Virus record (IMG/VR): IMGVR_UViG_3300042889_001272 | Coordinates: 62,001 to 126,000 of that record | Direction: 5' to 3' (one strand) | Length of the DNA stretch: 64,000 bases | In this document: in pieces, positions 7,620 through 35,520 of the stretch | How the letters are laid out: each line of letters begins with the position of its first letter | How positions within the stretch are numbered: the first letter of the stretch is position 1 | Notes under the pieces: model-generated | Seen by the model: only the letters and a program-made list of their open reading frames with translations | The model's database searches: none | Told to the model about the DNA's origin: nothing | Program-made: the position numbers and the translations under genes

Positions 7620-7659
7620 AGTAAAGTGGACTAACCCCAAGTTAACTATTACTTACAAT

Positions 7660-8385
7660 TTACTCTTCACCGTAAATCTTTAATACCTCAGCTACAGCGG
7701 CGTGGCGTTCTACGTCACATCGCTCGAACTCTACTACACCTATCATCTTTGACGATGATTTCTTTAGTCGTGCAGTAAAATCTCTTAATCCGTTTTCTTC
7801 AAAACCGCGATCATGCTGGGCCAAGTCGCCAGTTGCAAAGATTCTACTTGCATCACCAATACGAGTCAAAAGCATTTTCATTTGACTTGGCGTAGCGTTC
7901 TGCATTTCGTCTGCTAGAATGATTGATTTTTTAAATGTTCTTCCCCTCATGTAGGCTAAAGGAGCTACCTCGATTACATTCTCCTCGATCATATTCTCTA
8001 TGTATTTCGGAGCCCAATATTCTTCGAATACGTCGAATATAGGTCGAGTCCACGGAGCCATCTTTTCGATTAATGTGCCAGGCAAAAAGCCGTGTTGTTC
8101 GTCGACACTGACTGCTGGTCTTGTAATAATAATCTTTTCAATTCTGCCAGCTTTTAGTTCGCGAATAGCCATCATACAAGCTAATAGAGTCTTGCCCGTT
8201 CCGGCAGGACCCACTGCAAATACAATACTTTTTCTTTGATCTTCTAAAAGCGCAAGATAGTCTTCTTGTCTAATATTCTTAGGCAAGATTTCTACATGTC
8301 GACTGCGGTCCTTACGGAACTTTTCAATGTGCAGAACAGATGCGTGTTCTTGTGGTTGAACACGTTTTTGTTGTCGTTTCGTCAT
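7660..8385 (-). CDS. phoH: PhoH family ATPase
   Basis: GPAGTGKT, ITRPAV, GFLPG, APLAYMRGRT, DEMQN, TGDLAQHD; start at ATG 8385 with a GGAGG SD. Confidence 0.92.
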   Translation of the reverse strand: MTKRQQKRVQPQEHASVLHIEKFRKDRSRHVEILPKNIRQEDYLALLEDQRKSIVFAVGPAGTGKTLLACMMAIRELKAGRIEKIIITRPAVSVDEQHGFLPGTLIEKMAPWTRPIFDVFEEYWAPKYIENMIEENVIEVAPLAYMRGRTFKKSIILADEMQNATPSQMKMLLTRIGDASRIFATGDLAQHDRGFEENGLRDFTARLKKSSSKMIGVVEFERCDVERHAAVAEVLKIYGEE

Positions 8386-11376: not shown

Positions 11377-13578
11377 ATGGAAGACAATCAACATCACTCA
11401 ATCAATGAGATTTTAGAACAAGCATTTAAACTTGCTCTACATCGCGAACACGAATATGTTACACTGGAACATTTAACTATTGTACTTCTGGAAAATGAAG
11501 AAATTCGAGAATACTGTAAATTGATGACAGCTATTCCAGATGCAATTATAGACGATTTAACAGTGTTTTTAACCGGGCAAGATTATCTAGTAGTTGCCGG
11601 TTTAACTCGTCCACGTAAAACACAAACATTAGAGCGAGCATTTAATCGTGCATTTACACAAGCCATCTTTAATGGTCGTGCAGGTATTGCTCCACAAGAC
11701 ATGTTACTGAGTATTCTCAGTGAACGTAATAGTCATGCCTGCTATTACCTAGCACAGCATAATGTTAGTAAAGAAACATTCTTAGAAGTACTAGGGAAAA
11801 ATGCAAAGCAAGAAACTAAAGTTAAAAATAGTGCTGAAAAGATTTTAAATGAGTTTTGTATTAATTTAAACGAGGAAGCAAAAAATCTAAAAATCGATCC
11901 ATTAATTGGACGTAATCGAGAAGTTGAAAAACTTACACAGATTCTTGCTCGACGTAAAAAAAGAAATGCTATTCTGGTAGGCGAACCTGGTGTGGGTAAG
12001 ACCGCTATTGTAGAAGGTCTTGCTCGCAAGATTCATGAGAAAACTGTGCCGCACACACTCAAGGATTGTATAATTTATAGCTTAGACATGGGCGCATTAA
12101 TGGCAGGCACAAAATATCGAGGTGACTTCGAGGAACGTGTTAAACAAGTTATTGATGCATTAGAATCCCGCACAGATGTAATCTTATTCATTGATGAAAT
12201 TCACACAATGGTAGGCGCTGGTGCCGCTGGAAATAGCAACACGGACATGGCTAACTTGCTTAAACCTGCGCTGACCCGGGGCAAAGTACAGATAGTTGGC
12301 GCCACTACCTACGAAGAATATCGTGAAACAATTGAGCCAGAACGTGCTCTTGCTCGCCGTTTTACCAAACTTGATGTGGAAGAAATGTCACCCGAAGATT
12401 GCAAGAACATGCTTCACTGCATCATGCCCGAATATGAAAAATATCACGACATTGATGTCGACAGTGATGCCATTGACGCAGTAGTTGATTTAACTGTTGA
12501 ACACATGCACGACAAGTATCTGCCTGACAAAGCCATTGATATTTTAGACAGTGCCATGGCTAAAATAAAAGTCGACAGTAGAGAAACTTTAGTAACATTA
12601 TTTCATGTTAAACAAGAAATCAGTGCTCAAGCTAAAGTTCCTATGGAACAACTTAATACTCAAATTGAACCAATGAACTTGGACTATGAATCACAGATCA
12701 AACGGTTTGTTTTTGGACAAGATCAAGCTGTGGAAAAATTATTAGACAGTGTATATATTGCCAAAGCGGGGTTAAAGGATTTAACTAAACCGATGGGTAG
12801 TTATTTGTTTGTGGGACCAACCGGTGTTGGTAAAACAGAACTTGCAAATCAACTTGCATCCAGCTTGGGTATGCATCTTCTTCGCTATGACATGAGCGAG
12901 TACATGGAAAGTCATAAAGTTGCTAGTTTAATTGGTGCGCCGCCGGGCTATGTTGGCTATGGCGAAGGCGGCACAGGTGCAGGTAAACTCATCAATGATT
13001 TAGAAGAACATCCCAGTTCGGTGCTGTTATTAGACGAAGTTGAAAAGGCTCATCCAGATGTTCTTAATATTTTGTTAGGCGTCATGGATAATGGCATGCT
13101 TACCAGTAGTGGTGGCAAGACTGTGAGTTGCCGTAATTTGATTCTTATCATGACCAGTAACTTGGGTGCCCGTGATGGAGAACGAAATAAAATTGGTTTC
13201 AATAACAGCATCAATGGCACAGCCAGCCTTGAAGCAGTTAATAAACACTTTACTCCGGAGTTCCGCAATCGTTTAGATGCTATTATAGAATTTAACAGAC
13301 TTACAACTGAACAAATTACACCAATTGCCATCAAGTTTGTCAATGAGCTCAACGATCTATTGGCTGCTAAAAATATTACTCTTACATTGAATAATTCAGC
13401 GTTAGATCGTTTAGTAGCAGAAGGCTTTGACGAAAAAATGGGGGCCCGTCCAATGAAGCGTTTAATTGCGGATAAAATTAAAAAGCCTTTAAGTAAGCGT
13501 ATTGTCTTTGAAAATCTCAGCAACTGTAGCTTGGTAGTTTCGCACAACGGTGTTGATTATGAACTTAATAATACCTAA
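11377..13578 (+). CDS. clpA: ATP-dependent Clp protease ATPase subunit ClpA-like
   Basis: HEYVTLEHL N-domain; two AAA modules GEPGVGKT / FIDEIH and GPTGVGKT / LLDEVEKAHPDV; GARPMKR. Confidence 0.92.
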   Translation: MEDNQHHSINEILEQAFKLALHREHEYVTLEHLTIVLLENEEIREYCKLMTAIPDAIIDDLTVFLTGQDYLVVAGLTRPRKTQTLERAFNRAFTQAIFNGRAGIAPQDMLLSILSERNSHACYYLAQHNVSKETFLEVLGKNAKQETKVKNSAEKILNEFCINLNEEAKNLKIDPLIGRNREVEKLTQILARRKKRNAILVGEPGVGKTAIVEGLARKIHEKTVPHTLKDCIIYSLDMGALMAGTKYRGDFEERVKQVIDALESRTDVILFIDEIHTMVGAGAAGNSNTDMANLLKPALTRGKVQIVGATTYEEYRETIEPERALARRFTKLDVEEMSPEDCKNMLHCIMPEYEKYHDIDVDSDAIDAVVDLTVEHMHDKYLPDKAIDILDSAMAKIKVDSRETLVTLFHVKQEISAQAKVPMEQLNTQIEPMNLDYESQIKRFVFGQDQAVEKLLDSVYIAKAGLKDLTKPMGSYLFVGPTGVGKTELANQLASSLGMHLLRYDMSEYMESHKVASLIGAPPGYVGYGEGGTGAGKLINDLEEHPSSVLLLDEVEKAHPDVLNILLGVMDNGMLTSSGGKTVSCRNLILIMTSNLGARDGERNKIGFNNSINGTASLEAVNKHFTPEFRNRLDAIIEFNRLTTEQITPIAIKFVNELNDLLAAKNITLTLNNSALDRLVAEGFDEKMGARPMKRLIADKIKKPLSKRIVFENLSNCSLVVSHNGVDYELNNT

Positions 13579-28343: not shown

Positions 28344-29087
28344 ATGTTTACAGAAAAAGTCACTTGGGTTCATCACTGGAGTGATCGTACATTTAGTTTT
28401 AAATGCACTCGCAGTACAGCATTTAGATTTGTTGCCGGCGAATTTGCCATGATTGGCTTAATGATTGATGGCAAACGTGTGATCCGTGCATACAGTATAG
28501 TAAGTCCTCCCTGGAGTGAGGAACTGGAATTTCTCAGTATTAAAATACAAGACGGTGAATTAACCAGCAAACTTCAACACATAGAAGTTGGCAGTGAAGT
28601 CGTAGTCATGCCCAAATGCACAGGCACATTAGTAAATTCTGCATTAACACCTGGCGGAGAATTATGGATGCTGGCCACTGGTACAGGGCTTGCGCCATTC
28701 ATGAGTTTGATTCGTGATTTAGAAACACTGGAAACTTGGACGAAGATTCATATTGTACATAGTGTTAGACATAGTTCAGATTTAGCGTATAATGTAGACT
28801 TATCAACAGCGTTCAAACTTCATCCGGTAGATGGAGAGTTGCACGACTTGGTTGATGCTGTATTGGAATATCATCCTATACTTACTGGGCAAGGTGAACC
28901 CAGAATCGGCTATCAATTAACCACAGGCATGCTAAAGATTAACACTGACATAGATAAAATAATGCTATGCGGCAATTTAGAATTTAATCATCAAGTCTCC
29001 GATTGGTGCGAAGCTCGGGGTATGATGGAAGGAAGTATCCGTGAACCAGGAACATTTGTAGTAGAAAGAGCATTCGTAGAAAAATAA
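28344..29087 (+). CDS. fpr: Ferredoxin(flavodoxin)-NADP+ reductase
   Basis: FVAGEFAMIG, RAYSIVS, GELTSKL, LWMLATGTGLAPFMS, MLCGN, FVVERAF. Confidence 0.92.
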   Translation: MFTEKVTWVHHWSDRTFSFKCTRSTAFRFVAGEFAMIGLMIDGKRVIRAYSIVSPPWSEELEFLSIKIQDGELTSKLQHIEVGSEVVVMPKCTGTLVNSALTPGGELWMLATGTGLAPFMSLIRDLETLETWTKIHIVHSVRHSSDLAYNVDLSTAFKLHPVDGELHDLVDAVLEYHPILTGQGEPRIGYQLTTGMLKINTDIDKIMLCGNLEFNHQVSDWCEARGMMEGSIREPGTFVVERAFVEK

Positions 29088-29102
29088 GCAATAAATACTA
29101 CT

Positions 29103-29954
29103 ATGAAGACAGCAATCATAGTTAATGGAATGTGTCGACAAACATTAGTATCGTCAATGTCTTGGGACATATTTCCTTTTGAAGCTGATTGGTATCTTAG
29201 TACTTGGGATTACACACAAGAAACATATTTTCCAGACTCATTCACAAGCAAGAAAGAAATCGACAATATTAGGCATTTTTTTAAGCACATAGAAATAAAC
29301 AATTACGAAGAATATTTTACAAATTTTATAATTAAAGGTCGCGTCAACCCAATGTTTCGAAGTTTTAAATTATTAGATTCTATTAGAGATATAATTTTAT
29401 CACAGAAGTATGAAAGAATTATTATATTTCGACCAGATTTATACTTTAAAAAATTAGAACATCTTAATAATAATGACTTTGAAATTAATAATAACACAGT
29501 TAGAATTTTAGGAAGACATGAACCAGATAGTTTCTATGATAGAAAAAGAAGCACAGCAGATGATGTATTTTTTGTAATGCCCACTAATATATTTAAGATG
29601 TATTCAGATTTAAATTATATGTCTGAATTAAATGACAAATTTAATATTAGATCCGATGTACATAAATTAACATTTCATTTTTTCGACTCTTTGGGTTGTA
29701 ATGTAAAACTCATAGAAAAAATTAGATCGACTATTGTACGTAAGGACGCCGGCGACTATTATACAGAACATAACAATATCGATTTTACAATAATTGCAAG
29801 AATATTCGACAAAATGTATGATGAAAAAGATATGACAGGTGTTGGAAAGTTTTGGTGGCAATTTAATAAAATTATTATACATGAGCCAGCAGATCCAGAA
29901 AAGATTAGAATATCACAAGAGACTGGTGGAATTTTGAAATTAAGGAAACAATGA
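29103..29954 (+). CDS. AT-rich hypothetical protein, possibly glycosyltransferase-like
   Basis: ADWYLSTWD, IIFRPDLYF, DDVFF; TAAATA at 29092. Confidence 0.45.
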   Translation: MKTAIIVNGMCRQTLVSSMSWDIFPFEADWYLSTWDYTQETYFPDSFTSKKEIDNIRHFFKHIEINNYEEYFTNFIIKGRVNPMFRSFKLLDSIRDIILSQKYERIIIFRPDLYFKKLEHLNNNDFEINNNTVRILGRHEPDSFYDRKRSTADDVFFVMPTNIFKMYSDLNYMSELNDKFNIRSDVHKLTFHFFDSLGCNVKLIEKIRSTIVRKDAGDYYTEHNNIDFTIIARIFDKMYDEKDMTGVGKFWWQFNKIIIHEPADPEKIRISQETGGILKLRKQ

Positions 29955-30484
29955 AAACATTGATATTAGTAGCGTTACCGGAAGAGTTAGATAAGAATTT
30001 AGTAGATTGCCCTGTTGTTTATACAGGTGTAGGTGTGGCAAATGCCGCGATGCATACAACGTTGGCTTTACTTAAACATCGCCCTGACTTAGTTATTAAC
30101 TATGGCAGTGCTGGCAGTTTAAAAGGTATCACAGGATTAAACAGCGTAGCCAGTGTTTGTCAACGGGATGCTGATTGCAGTCCACTTCGCCAAAGAGGTT
30201 ACATGTTAGGCGAAAATGTGTTATACTATCACAGTGAAGAAGTAGGCGTTAGAGTAGGAAGTGGTAATAACTTTGTCACAGATCCTGATGCTTGGACACT
30301 TGAGCATTGTGATTTAGTGGACATGGAACTTTGGAGTATTGCTAAAGTCTGCGATCATGTTAAGATACCGTGGATAAGCCGTAAGTGGGTCAGCGACAAT
30401 GCTGACGGAGATGCTGGTGCAACATGGGAAGATGCACTACTAGCTGGACAAACAGAATTTGTTAATTGGTTTAATAACCGTTAA
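29951..30484 (+). CDS. MTA/SAH nucleosidase-like (PNP_UDP_1 family)
   Basis: LILVALPEE, YTGVGVANAA, VINYGSAG, GSGNNF, VDMELWSIAKVC, KWVSDNADG. Confidence 0.8.
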   Translation: MKTLILVALPEELDKNLVDCPVVYTGVGVANAAMHTTLALLKHRPDLVINYGSAGSLKGITGLNSVASVCQRDADCSPLRQRGYMLGENVLYYHSEEVGVRVGSGNNFVTDPDAWTLEHCDLVDMELWSIAKVCDHVKIPWISRKWVSDNADGDAGATWEDALLAGQTEFVNWFNNR

Positions 30485-30499
30485 TAATTACTTTTAATT

Positions 30500-30960
30500 T
30501 ACACATATGTTTGATTAGCGATGGCTAATCCCTATTGAGGTTGTACAGATTGTGCTGTGCCGTCGGAGTCTTAGGTTGTGTACGTCAGGAACTAACGAAA
30601 GGTTCTAAAAGATTGCGGCTCTGTGAAAAAGATACAACCGCAGATATTCACAGTTTCGCTGTATGGGATTGTGGAGTCACCGCTGACAGTCAAGTCTTGA
30701 GTAAGGGGTACCGGTCAACCGCCTCTGTTTTAATTAAATCTCATCAATACAGTATGAAAACGAACTCACGAAATGTTTTTATTTTTTGCCGGTTAACGGC
30801 AAATTATGACTTGAATCTACGAAATATTAAACCAGTGTTAAATCAAAATTCAAAACAATAAAGAGAATAGAAAATTGTTTCGAATACGAAGTATGAAGAA
30901 ACAATGTGCAGAGCACATACTAAGATGCGTGTAATATATGGATAGTTACGACTATCAGAT
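30500..30960 (+). ncRNA. Candidate large structured non-coding RNA (or origin-like element)
   Basis: ~500-nt gap in dense coding sequence with many hairpins (GATTAGC-GATG-GCTAATC, TGCGG/CCGCA, TTTGCCG-GTTAA-CGGCAAA, ATGTGC-AGA-GCACAT, GATAGT-TACG-ACTATC); strand not established. Confidence 0.5.
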
Positions 30961-30986
30961 AAATATTCATAATTACAGGAGCTTTT

Positions 30987-32396
30987 ATGTCAACAGATAA
31001 CTTTGGCGCATTAGGCGCAGACTTTTTTATAAGAACATTTGACAAGAGCTCGTTGATGAGTCAGTCAGATCTAGATCAACTCATTCAATATGTACAATTA
31101 ACCACAACGATTATAGCCGTAGGAGAATTTACTCCCGGTGTACAACAAAGTGTTTGGATGATACTTGAACGTGTAGATGTGCCATCAGCGCCAGGATACA
31201 CAGTAACTAACAACACAGAAGTTACAATGACTTCCGGCGGCTTGGTGACAATTGACTCGATACCGTGGACAAAGATAACAGGCAAGCCAAGTATCCCAAC
31301 AGATATTAACGATCTAACAGACACAGGTGGTCTGTTAGCAAATACAGGTGACTTTACATTCACTGGCGGTACTGCTAGTTTGCCGGCAGACAGTACTATG
31401 ATTCTTGATACTTTTCAAGTTGGTGGAAACAAGCAATCTACTTTAACTCTAAGTACTGCTACAATATCCAGTTTAGATGCTGGAAATAATCTAAGACTTA
31501 GAACTGGTTATGGAACTGGATTTGAAAAAGATTGGATACTTGGCGCTGATGGTTCTATTAGATTCCCCGATGCCAGTGTACAGACAACTGCTTATACTGG
31601 CAGTGATCATGCAGCCTATGAAATAACAAACACAAGTCCAGAAGGCTCTATATATTCTGTTAGCGTAGGCACTGATGGCGTTGTTAGTATGGTTACAAGT
31701 CGTGGTGGCATTGAGTTTGGCGCCATGCCAGAAGTTGGCGGACCAACACACTTCCACATTATGCGACCTGCTGGTGATAATGGTACAGACTTGTACTTCG
31801 GTGACGACTACAACTATGTTCTTCAACGCCCATCCGCATACGGCGGCGCCCCAGCATACGGTGTAGAGATTGGTGCCAACGATAATAATGGTGGTGCTCA
31901 ACAGGTATGGCGTTTTGGCACAGACGGCCACTTAACATTGCCAGCAGGTGGCGATATTAAAGACAGTACAGGTGCTAGTGTATTAGGTGGTGGTTTCAGT
32001 GGTGACTATGATGACTTAACCAACAAGCCAACATACAGAATAGCTGTGCCAACTGGCACAGGCCCTGGTGGCAACTTGCAAGCAGATTCACTGGCACTGG
32101 CTGGTCTTAATCCTGTTACAGATATACCATCAACTTGGGGTGGCGACTTGATACTTCAAGGTGGTGTAGGTGGCGCCAACAGCGACTTATATGGTGAAGT
32201 TAGAATCAAAAGCGGCCAGATTGGTGCAAATTATGAATGGCACTTTACCACTGATAAAAAGATTAAACTACCAGCAGGTGGTAGCATTGTTGACAGCACT
32301 GGTGCAAATGTATTTGTTTCTTTGACTACTCTCAAACAAGTTGTTGCAGACAGTACAGACTTTGCTGATTTTCAAACTAGAATTGCAGGTATGTAA
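30987..32396 (+). CDS. Putative tail fibre/virion protein
   Basis: WTKITGKP, repeated W.FG.DG.L.LPAGG.I.DSTGA motifs, DYDDLTNKP; TAAATA at 30960. Confidence 0.65.
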   Translation: MSTDNFGALGADFFIRTFDKSSLMSQSDLDQLIQYVQLTTTIIAVGEFTPGVQQSVWMILERVDVPSAPGYTVTNNTEVTMTSGGLVTIDSIPWTKITGKPSIPTDINDLTDTGGLLANTGDFTFTGGTASLPADSTMILDTFQVGGNKQSTLTLSTATISSLDAGNNLRLRTGYGTGFEKDWILGADGSIRFPDASVQTTAYTGSDHAAYEITNTSPEGSIYSVSVGTDGVVSMVTSRGGIEFGAMPEVGGPTHFHIMRPAGDNGTDLYFGDDYNYVLQRPSAYGGAPAYGVEIGANDNNGGAQQVWRFGTDGHLTLPAGGDIKDSTGASVLGGGFSGDYDDLTNKPTYRIAVPTGTGPGGNLQADSLALAGLNPVTDIPSTWGGDLILQGGVGGANSDLYGEVRIKSGQIGANYEWHFTTDKKIKLPAGGSIVDSTGANVFVSLTTLKQVVADSTDFADFQTRIAGM

Positions 32397-32412
32397 TAGA
32401 CCCTAGCATAAT

Positions 32413-32436
32413 AAAAGCCCCTTGCGGGGCTTTTTT
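32413..32436 (+). terminator. Intrinsic terminator
   Basis: AAAAGCCCC-TTGC-GGGGCTTTTTT. Confidence 0.9.
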
Positions 32437-32503
32437 ACGACTATAATTTATATCAATTAAATGTTTTATTTCTAATAAATACTAGTTATATATTGGAGTT
32501 AGT

Positions 32504-33286
32504 ATGATATTAAATGAGGGCGGTGATGTATTTGCAGACACCGAAGAATATGACCAAAAAGAAGCAACCGCTTTACAGGCTGTTGTAGATAAGGAATTAT
32601 CTTCTATTGGTCTATCATCCGTTATGATTGGCAGCGGTTTTCATCCTACTCCTGGACAAATGAGCGGGGATTTGGATCTACAAATAGAATTACAAGATAT
32701 CATTGATCGCTTCGATGTACAACCTGACCCTGCTGTTAAAAAAGATACTATAGAAAATGCTGCCCGCAGAACGCTGGCAGCACATCTACAAAGTAAAGGA
32801 TATCAAACAAAACGAGCAGGTATAAATGTTTTTATTCGTGTTCCTTATCAAGGTAAGTTTTATCAAGTAGACTTGGAATGTATATATAAGGTAGCAAAAG
32901 TAAGCAAATATCATCAGCATAAAATTCCTCAAGGTAGTACATACAAAGGCGTGGGCAAACAAATAATGATATCTATGTTGGCCAAAGAAAAAAATATGAT
33001 GTGGAGTGGTTGGGAAGGTTTATTTCAACGTACTCCTGATAATAAAAAAGGCGACATGGTCGCCGATGACTTTGATGATATAGCAAAAGTATTACTCGGG
33101 CCGCAATATGGTGAAGAAGATTTAGGCAGTGTAGAATCTATATTGGCTGCGCTGCCAAGTGCAAAAGCACAAGATTTATTGGCCAGGGCCAAGGCCGACA
33201 AAGCATGGAAAGAACGTGTGCCACGTGTAGAAAGTCTGCGTGTTGGCACCAATGAATGGTTCCGTAATATGATGAACAAGTTATGA
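32504..33286 (+). CDS. Pol-beta-superfamily nucleotidyltransferase-like protein
   Basis: MILNEGG start; GS...SGDLDL and FYQVDL motifs; TAAATA at 32476. Confidence 0.55.
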   Translation: MILNEGGDVFADTEEYDQKEATALQAVVDKELSSIGLSSVMIGSGFHPTPGQMSGDLDLQIELQDIIDRFDVQPDPAVKKDTIENAARRTLAAHLQSKGYQTKRAGINVFIRVPYQGKFYQVDLECIYKVAKVSKYHQHKIPQGSTYKGVGKQIMISMLAKEKNMMWSGWEGLFQRTPDNKKGDMVADDFDDIAKVLLGPQYGEEDLGSVESILAALPSAKAQDLLARAKADKAWKERVPRVESLRVGTNEWFRNMMNKL

Positions 33287-33942
33287 AAATAAACGACATT
33301 TTACGCGAGTACGACCAAGACTCTGCCAATAGTAAACAAATCATAGCAAAGCTGAAACAACTTGGATACAAGAGTGTTGGCAGCGGATATGATGCAACTG
33401 TATGGACCAAAGAAGAAGGCAGTGTTATTAAAATCATTATGCCGCAGGAGTTGTCTCGAGCAGAAGGAGACGCATCGTTTTTAGGGTTTTATGAGTTTTA
33501 TACTACACATAAGAAGTCACCATTCCTGCCAAGATTTATCAGCATTGGTGGCGCCGATCATACTGTGTTTACACTCAATGGAGTAGACTATAGACAAATA
33601 TCAATGGAGAATCTTGAACCCATTGCTAATAACAGCTTTATGGAACAGATGGTGTGGGCACTCAGTGACTTGTCCATTATACCTTTTATGAAATGGAGAG
33701 ACGCTAAAGAGCAACTGCTTAACTCTGAGTTTTGGACAAATTTTGAAGGACCAGGTAGAGAAAGCGACATCGTAAAAGGACTAAGTAATTCGGCAGTAGA
33801 GAAGATGTATGCAAGTTTATTTGCAGTGATGCAAGAGCTTTTTCAATTTGGAAAAAGTCAAGGACTGGGTTGGGATTTACACACTGAAAATGTTATGCGT
33901 CGAGGTGATACACCAGTTATCACTGACCCGTTTACCGGATAA
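33283..33942 (+). CDS. Kinase-like protein (protein kinase/APH fold)
   Basis: MKINDILRE start; GSGYDATVW, VIKII, WDLHTENVM, VITDP. Confidence 0.65.
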   Translation: MKINDILREYDQDSANSKQIIAKLKQLGYKSVGSGYDATVWTKEEGSVIKIIMPQELSRAEGDASFLGFYEFYTTHKKSPFLPRFISIGGADHTVFTLNGVDYRQISMENLEPIANNSFMEQMVWALSDLSIIPFMKWRDAKEQLLNSEFWTNFEGPGRESDIVKGLSNSAVEKMYASLFAVMQELFQFGKSQGLGWDLHTENVMRRGDTPVITDPFTG

Positions 33943-33946
33943 TAGT

Positions 33947-34375
33947 ATGCTAATTAAAGAACTAACAGAAAACGAAGAGCCAACAAGAATCAAACTAGCT
34001 GACAATTCAGCCGCCAAGTCTTGGATTCAAAAAGTCTATAATTTATATCCGCAACAGTTTCAAAACAACCACGTCATGCCCATGGGTGGTCAAGGCGATG
34101 ATCAACAGTTTGCCATGTTTGAACTTGTTCCAAGTTTTAGCAAACGTGGTGCAGTGGAAGTAAAATGGTTTCAAGCATATCCGCTACGTGCAGGAGTAGG
34201 CAGTCGTGCCATGAAAGAATTACAGAGCTTGGCCAGTGAAGATGGTATTTCACTTACATTATTCCCGTGGGATAAAGGACAAGTCAGTCAAAGTAAGCTA
34301 ACCAAGTTCTACCAAGGTCGGGGATTTAAGCCCGCTGTCAAAGGCAGCAAAAGTATGCAATGGAGTCCTGAATGA
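33947..34375 (+). CDS. GNAT acetyltransferase-like protein
   Basis: Starts MLIKELTE (ATG 33947); RAGVGSRAM acetyl-CoA motif A, LTKFYQGRGF. Confidence 0.6.
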   Translation: MLIKELTENEEPTRIKLADNSAAKSWIQKVYNLYPQQFQNNHVMPMGGQGDDQQFAMFELVPSFSKRGAVEVKWFQAYPLRAGVGSRAMKELQSLASEDGISLTLFPWDKGQVSQSKLTKFYQGRGFKPAVKGSKSMQWSPE

Positions 34376-35520
34376 GATTATTGGAACTAAAAGAATTAAT
34401 GGAAGCAGTGGATCCCAAGCTGGGTCGTGCTTTTAATCACTTAGAGGATCTTGTATTCTTCTATGGTAGTGCTGGTACTATTGAAGCATTGGAACATTTA
34501 AAAGATATGAACACAGAACAAGGTAGTTCGAGTGTTCGTATGAAGTGGGACGGCAATCCTCAAATTTACTGGGGTCGTGAGCGTGGTGTATTTGTTCCTC
34601 CGCATGGTCATAATCAGTGGAGTCGAAAAGCAATGCCTGCTAATCCAACGGATGTATCAGACTTTATTATGTCTAGTGGTAAAGCGGTTACTCCGGAAGA
34701 AGTCAGTGCGAGACAACAGTTTGCAGATAAGTTTGCCAGTTTAGCACCATTATTTGAACCAGGCACTCCTGCAGACTTGGATGGCAACAGCACATTCTAT
34801 GTCTATGCTGATGCACTATTCTTATCACCACCCGAGTTAAAGGACGGAGTTTATAGTTTCAATCCTAATCCAAAAAGTCAAACAACATATCATGTGCGAG
34901 CAGACAGTGATCTAGGACGTAGAATTGCAGGTGCAGAAGTTATGGTTGTTGGCCATGCTTACTTTACTGAACACGGCGCACCTGATTCAGCACAAATTCC
35001 TATCAAAGACTTTACAATGTTTAATGCTAATCCAAAACTAATTGTCCTGGGTCCAATATATAATGTAGCACCAGTTAAAGTTGATAATACAATGATTCAA
35101 CAAGTAGAGAATCATATCAAGCAACATGCAAATCAAGTTGATACATTCCTACAAAGTGTTGCAGGTTTAAGTGACTTAAAACAAATCATTTATAACTATG
35201 TAAATCAAAGTGCTAAGGCAAAACAATTAGATAGTTTAAGTGCTAATCACTTCTTCCAATGGATGACTTCAAAAGTCAGTGCTCCGAAACAAGCAAAGAT
35301 CAAAGAATTAAATTCTGCACAGGGCAATGTATTAGAAGAGATATTTAAAATTGTTCGTGCTATACAAATATTAAAAGACAATGTCATTGACCAAATTGAG
35401 TCAGGACCTCGAGCAGATATCTGGGACACCAACGGCGAAGGTCGTGTGCGTTATGCAGATGGAAATAAACAATTCGGCAACGTGAAGTTTGTACCGAGAA
35501 AGCGTTGGACACCACAATGA
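34372..35520 (+). CDS. Ligase-like nucleotidyltransferase (KxDG motif)
   Basis: MRLLELKE start; NHLEDL, VRMKWDGNP, GEGRV, VKFVPR. Confidence 0.55.
   Translation: MRLLELKELMEAVDPKLGRAFNHLEDLVFFYGSAGTIEALEHLKDMNTEQGSSSVRMKWDGNPQIYWGRERGVFVPPHGHNQWSRKAMPANPTDVSDFIMSSGKAVTPEEVSARQQFADKFASLAPLFEPGTPADLDGNSTFYVYADALFLSPPELKDGVYSFNPNPKSQTTYHVRADSDLGRRIAGAEVMVVGHAYFTEHGAPDSAQIPIKDFTMFNANPKLIVLGPIYNVAPVKVDNTMIQQVENHIKQHANQVDTFLQSVAGLSDLKQIIYNYVNQSAKAKQLDSLSANHFFQWMTSKVSAPKQAKIKELNSAQGNVLEEIFKIVRAIQILKDNVIDQIESGPRADIWDTNGEGRVRYADGNKQFGNVKFVPRKRWTPQ

Follow-up and report, generated by a model that had tools for sequence, protein, structure and literature searches.

A well-supported new family of large structured RNAs in uncultured giant phages, with one variable 7-nt sequence carried twice

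Large structured RNAs that combine many conserved nucleotides with pseudoknots are rare, and those whose function has been solved are ribozymes, riboswitches or RNA machines. Two such RNAs associated with phages, GOLLD and ROOL, assemble into multimers made of RNA alone (PMC12286853). Two further precedents bear on the present work. Polynucleobacter-1 (RF01718), the described entity nearest to the RNA reported here, is an orphan 141-nt motif from Burkholderiales and from freshwater and estuary metagenomes that was listed, as possibly cis-regulatory, without further study (Weinberg et al. 2010, PMC2864571), and Fremin et al. (2023, PMC10690425) obtained 10,006 candidate viral RNAs by prediction from IMG/VR. 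Here we describe an element from a 64,000-nt stretch of phage DNA, hereafter the window, which comprises positions 62,001-126,000 of the 235,561-bp IMG/VR record IMGVR_UViG_3300042889_001272 (66% complete according to CheckV). We consider it very probable that this element is a structured noncoding RNA (ncRNA) gene of a new family. In particular, the intergenic gap in which it lies is likely to hold a stand-alone plus-strand ncRNA of ∼418 nt (∼30501 to ∼30918 in window coordinates) that founds or joins a large phage-specific family outside Rfam. Unless genome positions are specified, all coordinates below refer to the window and all features of the RNA to its plus strand.

The new RNA resembles GOLLD and ROOL in being large (400-800 nt in that class), multi-helix, pseudoknotted, phage-borne, stand-alone and found by comparative genomics, and GOLLD, too, was found partly in lake metagenomes. 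However, it has no sequence or structure match to either, is smaller, and does not lie beside tRNA genes here. To our knowledge, nothing like the twin-sequence module described below has been reported for GOLLD or ROOL. With Rfam 15, the whole window returned no match at gathering thresholds (models for tmRNA, RNase P, SRP, 6S, group I/II, GOLLD, ROOL, HEARO and T-box included), fourteen diverse family loci returned none, and the element region gave only four chance-level matches of 16-20 bits at E ≤ 10. ARAGORN found no tRNA or tmRNA in the window and none at the element in 26 family loci. An earlier note on this DNA had recognized no hallmark sequences of tRNA, tmRNA, RNase P, SRP or group I/II introns here and had proposed the Rfam search; these results agree with its impression. 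We found no description in the literature of the full RNA, its pseudoknot or its twin rule, although the family may be among the 10,006 candidates mentioned above.

Open reading frames (ORFs) were read with genetic code table 11, and nearly all plausible genes of the window lie on the plus strand. The gap runs for 502 nt (30485-30986) between the stop codon of a nucleoside-phosphorylase-like (PNP-like) gene at 30484 and the start of the next gene at 30987. Once a spurious ORF at 30535-30861 is set aside, it is the longest plus-strand ORF-free stretch of the window; the runner-up, 380 nt at 7620-7999, is filled by a minus-strand ORF. The earlier note was therefore right to single it out as the largest gap, and the loops that it named are all present: GAUG at 30520-30523 (hairpin 30513-30530), UACG at 30947-30950 (hairpin 30941-30956), and GAAA within loops at 30594-30600 and 30625-30633. 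Its G+C-rich first half is also real (0.43-0.47 over 30500-30750 vs. 0.29-0.35 on the 3′ side), but the AT-rich second half belongs to the same RNA. The limits that it drew, 30500-30960, hold in part: the RNA spans ∼30501-∼30918, whereas the UACG hairpin falls outside the portion conserved across the family. These ends were placed rather than mapped, the 5′ end from the position of a promoter and the 3′ end only from where family-wide conservation stops, after helix H11.

Relatives of the element were fetched through its two flanking proteins. Eleven distinct relatives contain the element, with 80-92% nucleotide identity, and their PNP protein matches that of the window phage at 69-92% identity. 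An invariant 19-mer from helix H7, GGGGUACNGGUCAACCGCC (30705-30723 in the window), is present in at least 120 IMG/VR contigs. A variant of this hairpin, GGUACNGCGUAACCGCC, marks at least 119 further contigs in which the overall architecture is alike. We refer to these as the first and second subfamilies. We reduced 103 full-length flanks to 64 representatives below 90% identity, and among these homology extends from a 5′ hairpin to two 3′ hairpins, over ∼400-450 nt. A 145-position covariance model (CM) of the core, R1, built from 62 members, recovered 91 copies at 55-172 bits from the fetched loci. The window element is a seed member of R1, so that its score of 129.1 bits (E = 5e-33, 30584-30727) is a match by construction; independent members score 97-172 bits. 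In the window we find helices H3-H5 and H7, the loop-to-strand pseudoknot, and two identical 7-mers flanking helix H9, all of which define the family.

The family appears to be confined to uncultured phages. BLASTN of the window element and three other members against 50,697 cultured-phage records (INPHARED) gave no match, and a 121-nt core query against the same records at E ≤ 10 gave only two chance hits. A scan of prokaryotic genomes, one for each of 185,579 species, with an 18-base pattern (17 specified bases) returned 59 matches, about the chance expectation. Only three of these are true homologues, all on contigs of metagenome-assembled genomes: L211 and L218 (Haliscomenobacter sp. EUL_031, ctg3 and ctg1) and L223 (Flavobacterium sp. 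EUL_072, ctg52). These contigs measure 148 kb, 183 kb and 6 kb and resemble DNA of jumbo phages that was binned with Bacteroidota, which is at best a weak hint of a Bacteroidota host. Carriers of known size are jumbo phages: one is a complete 346,856-bp genome with terminal repeats, and the other carriers with estimates extrapolate to ∼350 kb. Sequencing runs with related copies are labelled freshwater, estuary or wastewater. The phage genome that contains the window carries 20 tRNA genes in two clusters (genome positions 345-2472 and 28,437-35,483), none of them in the window; they include two tRNA-Glu(UUC), two tRNA-Met(CAU) and one tRNA-Asp(GUC).

We derived the helices by averaging pair probabilities and computing mutual information over 59 representatives, and then checked them base by base and by comparing cognate with non-cognate complementarity (given below in that order). 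The predicted 5′ sub-domain of ∼85 nt (30501-30581) contains P1, H1, P2 and H2. P1 (30501-05/30577-81) is tentative, with a complementarity of 3.7 vs. 3.4. H1 (30513-19/30524-30), which carries the GAUG loop, reaches 6.5 vs. 4.1 over 35 distinct duplexes. P2 (30531-34/30572-75) appears as CCUA/UAGG, CCCA/UGGG, CGCAAG/CUUGCG and UCAUCAA/UUGAUGA, with mutual information for 30532:30575, and H2 (30539-48/30555-64) is the remaining hairpin. The core helices H3-H5 occupy 30588-30678. They comprise H3 (30588-93/30601-06), H4 (30614-18/30638-42 plus 30622-24/30634-36) with its conserved GUGAAAAAGAUAC loop, and H5 (30643-45/30676-78 plus 30647-57/30665-75), which ends in the 7-nt loop GCUGUAU. Part of this loop, CUGUAU at 30659-64, pairs with AUACAG at 30747-52 in a pseudoknot, for which complementarity is 7.4 vs. 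5.6 and more than 14 compensating versions are seen, among them AUUUAUUAU/AUAAUAAAU, GUCUAUUC/GAAUAGAU, GCUGCUGAUC/GAUCAGUGGC and GCCGUAUU/AAUACGGU.

Helix P6 (UGAG 30698-701/CUCA 30740-43) covaries as UGAG/CUCA, AGAG/CUCU and GGAG/CUCC, and encloses H7 together with a variable short hairpin. H7 itself (30704-08/30722-26 plus 30712-14/30719-21, UCAA loop) is almost invariant, although its first pair is A-U in 31 sequences and G-C in 50. The twin module follows. The stem of its Module A (30756-61/30775-80) closes a 13-nt loop that holds ACUC and then the first 7-mer, X1 (ACGAAAU, 30768-30774). The conserved G+C-rich hairpin H9 (30785-91/30797-803) stands between the twins, with a mean pair probability of 0.9-0.98 and pair switches UA/CG, GC/AU and GC/CG. 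Module B (30805-30828) has UAUGAC, AUCU and then the second 7-mer, X2 (ACGAAAU, 30819-30825). An A-rich linker that differs among members in length and sequence (30829-30875, from the alignments) leads to H10 (30876-81/30898-903, with an inner GA/GAA loop and a further stem at 30884-87/30891-94; 6.1 vs. 3.7 over 40 distinct duplexes) and to H11 (30904-09/30913-18; 6.9 vs. 3.8 over 30 distinct duplexes), the likely 3′ end of the RNA.

When 84 distinct core sequences were aligned to the CM, 96.9% of paired cells held standard pairs, compared with 83.3% after shuffling, and 23 of 32 pairs changed on both sides. These include all 13 pairs of H5, and the core helices 1-4 are paired in 92.9-100% of cells. 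The covariation score of 0.382 compares with 0.148 for shuffled alignments, none of 500 of which reached it, and it drops to ≤0.08 when partners are slid by 1-3 columns. Thus, covariation strongly supports a predicted fold of ∼12 helices and a loop-to-strand pseudoknot. Eight core pairs are G-U or U-G in most members. Since these would be A-C on the opposite strand, the functional strand is the plus strand and the molecule is RNA or, formally, single-stranded plus-strand DNA. Judged from these comparisons, the RNA is conserved across uncultured giant phages, is untranslated, and consists of a pseudoknotted core (H1-H7, P2 and P6), a twin module, and H10 and H11. The earlier note had offered an unclassified large phage ncRNA as one of two explanations and had suggested testing homologues for covariation. 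The compensatory changes, the lack of an Rfam 15 model and a reading frame that is not protein-like all favor that explanation.

The genome holds a second, very divergent copy at genome positions 216,997-217,490 (L256:1368-1860), between a plus-strand and a minus-strand ORF. It carries the variant hairpin GGUACNGCGUAACCGCC, and R1 matches it at 217,130-217,269 with 22 bits (E = 3.6e-4 for the genome). The genome's only match to RF01718 (216,997-217,138, 77.2 bits) lies 5′ of the core of this copy. RF01718 also lies directly 5′ of the core in five of 12 second-subfamily loci tested. This placement, in the second copy and in the five other loci, makes it probable that RF01718 is an alternative 5′ domain within a larger RNA of the superfamily. 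In the window, by contrast, RF01718 (141 positions, membership cut-off 37 bits) had no match over 30400-31050 even at E ≤ 10. The window RNA shares with Polynucleobacter-1 a habitat of fresh water and estuaries and the status of an orphan motif, but its own ∼85-nt 5′ sub-domain (P1, H1, P2, H2) is different, and the Rfam model lacks the core, the pseudoknot, the twin module and H10/H11. The window element thus falls outside RF01718 and is instead related to the larger RNA of which RF01718 is a part.

The most unusual property of the RNA is the pair of 7-mers. H9 is flanked by two similar modules, ...AUGAC...ACUC-X... and ...UAUGAC...AUCU-X..., in which X is the 7-mer, single-stranded in this fold. 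In the window the two ACGAAAU copies (30768-74 and 30819-25) are 51 nt apart, and across the family the spacing is 51-64 nt. X1 and X2 are identical in all 100-116 distinct members of the first subfamily, even though 13 versions occur there: AGAUGAU, GGAUAAU, AGAUAAU, ACGAAAU, GGAUGAU, AGAUGAA, GGAUGAA, GGAUGAG, AGACGAA, AGAUCAA, ACAUGAA, GUCGGAA and GAAUAAU. The second subfamily obeys the same identity rule with at least 15 more versions, for at least 28 in all; its cores include AGUCAAG, UGUCAAG, UGCCAAG, GGAAAAG, UGGCAU, GACAUGU, GGCAAG and AGCGAA. The divergent second copy of the window phage has CGACAGG and UGACAAG (assigned partly by eye), which share five of seven positions and are two transitions apart; wobble pairing to a common complement, or a relaxed constraint, would fit this mismatch. 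By mutual information the twins are the strongest non-Watson-Crick couplings in the RNA, and the coupling is parallel, at a constant offset, rather than antiparallel. A maximum-likelihood tree of the RNA without the twins requires at least 31 changes of the 7-mer label. Counted by position, there are 16 changes at position 1 (A/G) and 10 at position 5 (G/A), while position 6 is A throughout.

A partner for the twins was sought at three scales. Inside the RNA there is neither a reverse complement nor a third covarying column. Within ±10 kb of 116 loci, neither complements of the twins nor extra copies are in excess (53 cognate vs. 63 control). Across the 235-kb genome, neither the 7-mer nor its complement departs from the expected frequency, and no occurrence extends beyond the 7 nt into flanking sequence. 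Complement sites at genome positions 131,479 and 131,503 were considered and set aside; they lie inside a minus-strand ORF and look coincidental. A third ACGAAA, in the H3 loop (30595-30600), does not track the twins in relatives, where it reads ACGUCA in L073 and ACGAGA in L072, and we regard it as coincidental. Box C/D, hammerhead, CsrA-sponge and anticodon-loop mimicry were also rejected for the twin motif, on the by-eye judgement that the supposedly invariant residues vary.

The identity of the twins means that one reader meets both 7-mers, and for this reason we favor a model with a scaffold and an address, in which the simplest readers would be a complementary RNA or a sequence-specific protein or nuclease. 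We advance this bivalent, trans-acting mechanism as a tentative possibility. The RNA would act in trans, its conserved core serving as the scaffold and its twin sequences as an exchangeable address that engages one partner twice. That partner might be another RNA that offers a short complementary stretch, or else an RNA-binding protein or nuclease that recognizes a specific sequence; during infection the phage RNA could serve as a bivalent decoy, sponge or adaptor. A more specific version, in which the RNA is a programmable adaptor or decoy whose 7-nt address, shown twice, is retuned in each lineage to a lineage-specific partner, is more doubtful. Candidate partners would then include the anticodon loop of a tRNA attacked by a host defense nuclease, or the recognition site of a host RNase toxin. 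A stranger reading has the two identical strands form a parallel duplex with one another. Such pairing would demand identity at every position, and the X-hairpin-X topology fits it, but we know of little precedent for parallel homo-pairing of strands.

Alternatively, the twins could be two cleavage sites for a sequence-specific endoribonuclease, either a phage enzyme or a host toxin, which would release the ∼51-nt H9 unit. The RNA would then be an antitoxin mimic or a small-RNA precursor, similar to ToxI. ToxI-type units are bounded by the cleavage site of their toxin, type III toxin sites are A-rich, and phages carry antitoxin mimics (pseudo-ToxI). The likeness to type III antitoxins (ToxI, AntiQ, CptI) lies in a short structured unit bounded by an identical short A-rich sequence: two identical sites 51-64 nt apart flank a conserved hairpin, the twins are A-rich at their 3′ side around the invariant A at position 6, and the ACGAAAU of the window contains AAAU. 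However, the unit forms no tandem array of full repeats, no ToxN/AbiQ-like or other RNase gene is a constant neighbor, and no toxin gene is adjacent (the neighbors are PNP-like or without family match here, GIY-YIG and SbcCD-like elsewhere). In addition, no contig from an RNA library has a joint or an end at the twin sites, and the unit sits within a 418-nt RNA whose large conserved 5′ core this explanation leaves without a role. We therefore regard cleavage as unlikely.

The twins also recall the specifier loop of T-box Stem I, in which a variable triplet plus a conserved A stands on the 3′ side of a loop before a helix. If the codon-like triplet and its A paired with an anticodon and U33, the RNA might bind or shield two copies of a chosen tRNA. 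Every version of the 7-mer can indeed be read as NNN followed by the invariant A (AUG-A, AUA-A, GAA-A, ACG-A, GUC-A, GAC-A, GGC-A and others), and the two tRNA-Glu(UUC) and the tRNA-Asp(GUC) of the phage match GAA-A in the window copy and GAC-A in the second copy. Given 20 phage tRNAs, however, two such matches would arise by chance with a probability of ∼0.1. The coupled positions 1, 2 and 7 cannot pair with position 37 or 38 of these tRNAs, and the register of the triplet is not fixed relative to its flanks. Unlike in a T-box, the twins come in two copies and their coupling extends beyond four nucleotides. We see no Rfam T-box match, T-box sequence, antiterminator, Stem I platform or downstream aminoacyl-tRNA synthetase gene here. 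A specifier-like role is thus rather improbable.

The scaffold-and-address model can be contrasted with self-assembly. An RNA of this size and degree of structure, carried by phages and with no protein partner in its vicinity, might form homo-oligomeric particles, with the twins as contacts between protomers, as an "ornate" RNA in the manner of the multimers reported for phage-associated GOLLD and ROOL (PMC12286853). Yet the twins lack self-complementarity, we see no complementary loop that covaries with them, and no Rfam match to GOLLD or ROOL exists. On balance, we judge self-assembly to be quite improbable.

The genes around the RNA bear on whether it acts by itself. In the window it is preceded by the PNP-like gene (29951-30484, plus strand; 177 aa, Pfam PF01048 PNP_UDP_1, E = 1.2e-14) and followed by a plus-strand gene for a 469-aa protein without family match (30987-32396), whose relatives share mainly residues 94-443. 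A spacer (30919-30986) conserved only in the closest relatives separates the RNA from the latter; it contains the hairpin at 30941-30956, a perfect 6-bp stem with the sequence GAUAGU UACG ACUAUC, and the ribosome-binding site AGGAG at 30977-30981. This hairpin could be a processing signal, a termination signal or part of the leader of the next gene. Neither flanking gene is a constant neighbor of the RNA. PNP homologues of ∼72% identity occur in L066 and L068-L071 without an adjoining RNA. In four close relatives (L057, L063, L072 and L073), genes other than PNP precede the RNA; two of these, L057 and L063, have collagen-like (collagen-repeat) and Mtd_N ORFs between the PNP gene and the RNA and a different gene downstream. 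About 40 of the 63 other representatives have SbcD/SbcC-like (gp47/gp46-type) genes and then a small SegE-like GIY-YIG ORF ahead of the RNA, and downstream of it small ORFs and a baseplate-hub gene that run on the opposite strand. Thus, the RNA is probably a stand-alone unit, since its flanking genes differ between clades and the next ORFs are mostly on the opposite strand.

The SegE-like ORF (Pfam PF19835, E = 6e-31) ends just 5′ of the RNA on the same strand in loci numbered L076-L195, for example at L135:4760-5188 and L168:9152-9628. The RNA gene may simply have a free-standing homing endonuclease as its neighbor, much as tRNA genes surround T4 segB, or there may be a functional link between the two.

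A promoter scan found a weak sigma-70-like promoter at 30459-30488 (TTGTTA-18-AATAAT, plus strand), overlapping the end of the PNP gene. At the aligned position, the four close relatives named above have TTGACA-17-TATAAT (L057 and L063), TTGACT-17-TATAAT (L073) and TAGACT-17-TATAAT (L072), and these promoters end ∼7 nt 5′ of the conserved ACACA/UACAC start. The insertions at L057:4558-5665 and L063:4570-6031, with their collagen-repeat and Mtd_N (major tropism determinant N-terminal) ORFs, each bring a consensus promoter for the RNA. We infer that the RNA is transcribed from its own promoter, consensus in close relatives and weak in the window phage. Contigs assembled from the RNA libraries of three metatranscriptomes, from different freshwater and estuary studies, cover the relatives' RNA at positions equivalent to 30497-30692, 30515-30750 and, in three cases, within 30616-30762. 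In two of the three libraries, little else of a 5-kb stretch is covered. These contigs are weakly consistent with an abundant transcript.

This arrangement also speaks to the proposal that the element is a cis-acting, riboswitch-like leader controlling the downstream gene, here the 469-aa ORF. No terminator separates H11 from that gene, and the related motif Polynucleobacter-1 has been listed as possibly cis-regulatory (PMC2864571). Nonetheless, downstream genes that are variable or convergent argue against a 5′ leader: close relatives differ in their downstream gene, and most members have their next ORFs on the opposite strand. Moreover, the RNA appears to have its own promoter, and 418 nt with ∼12 helices is far larger than known leaders. 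A leader function is therefore very improbable.

The other explanation offered by the earlier note, a replication or packaging origin, fares poorly, and we give only a slim chance to any DNA element of this kind, recombination sites included. It would account for a large noncoding gap with many inverted repeats, and two identical direct 7-mers recall iterons or recombination cores. However, the conserved G-U pairs can function on one strand only, the long-range and pseudoknot pairings covary, and the 7-mers number just two, 51 nt apart. Tandem repeats were not found at the element. The cumulative GC skew, which the note had suggested as a check, shows no turn at the site: its minimum and maximum lie at genome positions 26,790 and 144,924, and it climbs steadily through the element near 92,500. 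A diversity-generating retroelement template RNA was likewise rejected, as the 235-kb record has no RVT_1, the element is conserved across phages rather than matching a neighboring gene, and Mtd_N ORFs lie upstream only in L057 and L063.

That the plus-strand ORF at 30535-30861 encodes a protein has next to no chance: its 108 codons are open, from a TTG start, in the window phage alone, and the reading fails because all 10 distinct relatives have 1-9 stops in this frame, six of the 10 differ in length by other than a multiple of 3, variable columns (45/36/34 over codon positions 1/2/3) are not in excess at the third, and neither Pfam nor PHROG gives a match. The earlier note had named protein-like conservation of this frame as grounds for giving up an RNA, and no such conservation is seen. 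A supposed conserved small peptide downstream of the core, with a recurring "...HRAYGEL", proved to be translated hairpin H9, and it changes when H9 covaries.

Several observations weigh against the interpretation that we prefer, an ncRNA gene whose product acts bivalently in trans. The folding energy is ordinary (z = −1.4 on the plus strand and −2.2 on the minus strand). Because it is not beyond chance, hairpin density alone proves nothing, and the support comes from conservation and covariation in relatives. The CM alignment was fitted to the structure, which somewhat inflates the paired percentages; the slide control and the independent complementarity tests agree with its result. Neither a terminator-like site on the plus strand nor a U-tract was found after H11, so read-through into the 469-aa gene is possible in the window phage. 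The RNA-library contigs give no strand, ends or level and may reflect DNA carry-over, and in run X4 the flanking genes are covered too, rather than the RNA alone. If the 3′ module recombines as a block, independent twin changes may have been overcounted, but recombination cannot create twin identity. The versions observed require at least ∼27 separate double changes. Finally, because no partner for the twins was found in the RNA, within ±10 kb or in the 235-kb genome, the identity rule has to carry the bivalent mechanism by itself.

Two side observations concern the surrounding window, whose gene content includes a T4-type DNA polymerase, tail-fiber proteins and a Lon-like protease. The last is a 733-aa ORF at 11377-13578 that very strongly matches a phage ATP-dependent (Lon-like) protease family (PHROG 4871, E = 4e-243). 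Two genes upstream of the RNA, a 283-aa ORF without family match (29103-29954) has a strikingly low G+C content (0.20-0.31, compared with a genome value of ∼0.38), which may point to recent acquisition.

Overall, the element is well supported as the representative of a new family of large ncRNAs in phages, one that follows an unusual sequence rule and has ties to an orphan Rfam motif. The family is abundant (at least 120 plus at least 119 IMG/VR contigs) and appears confined to giant phages of lakes and estuaries that have not been cultured; Rfam lacks it. A larger phage RNA probably includes the orphan motif Polynucleobacter-1 as its 5′ domain. The twin rule, under which a molecule carries the same 7-mer twice while its version varies among molecules and has been switched many times, provides a concrete handle on function. 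It implies that one short sequence is read twice, and the RNA looks reprogrammable. If it does prove to be a programmable adaptor, it would represent an RNA-only counter-defense or host-takeover device of jumbo phages.

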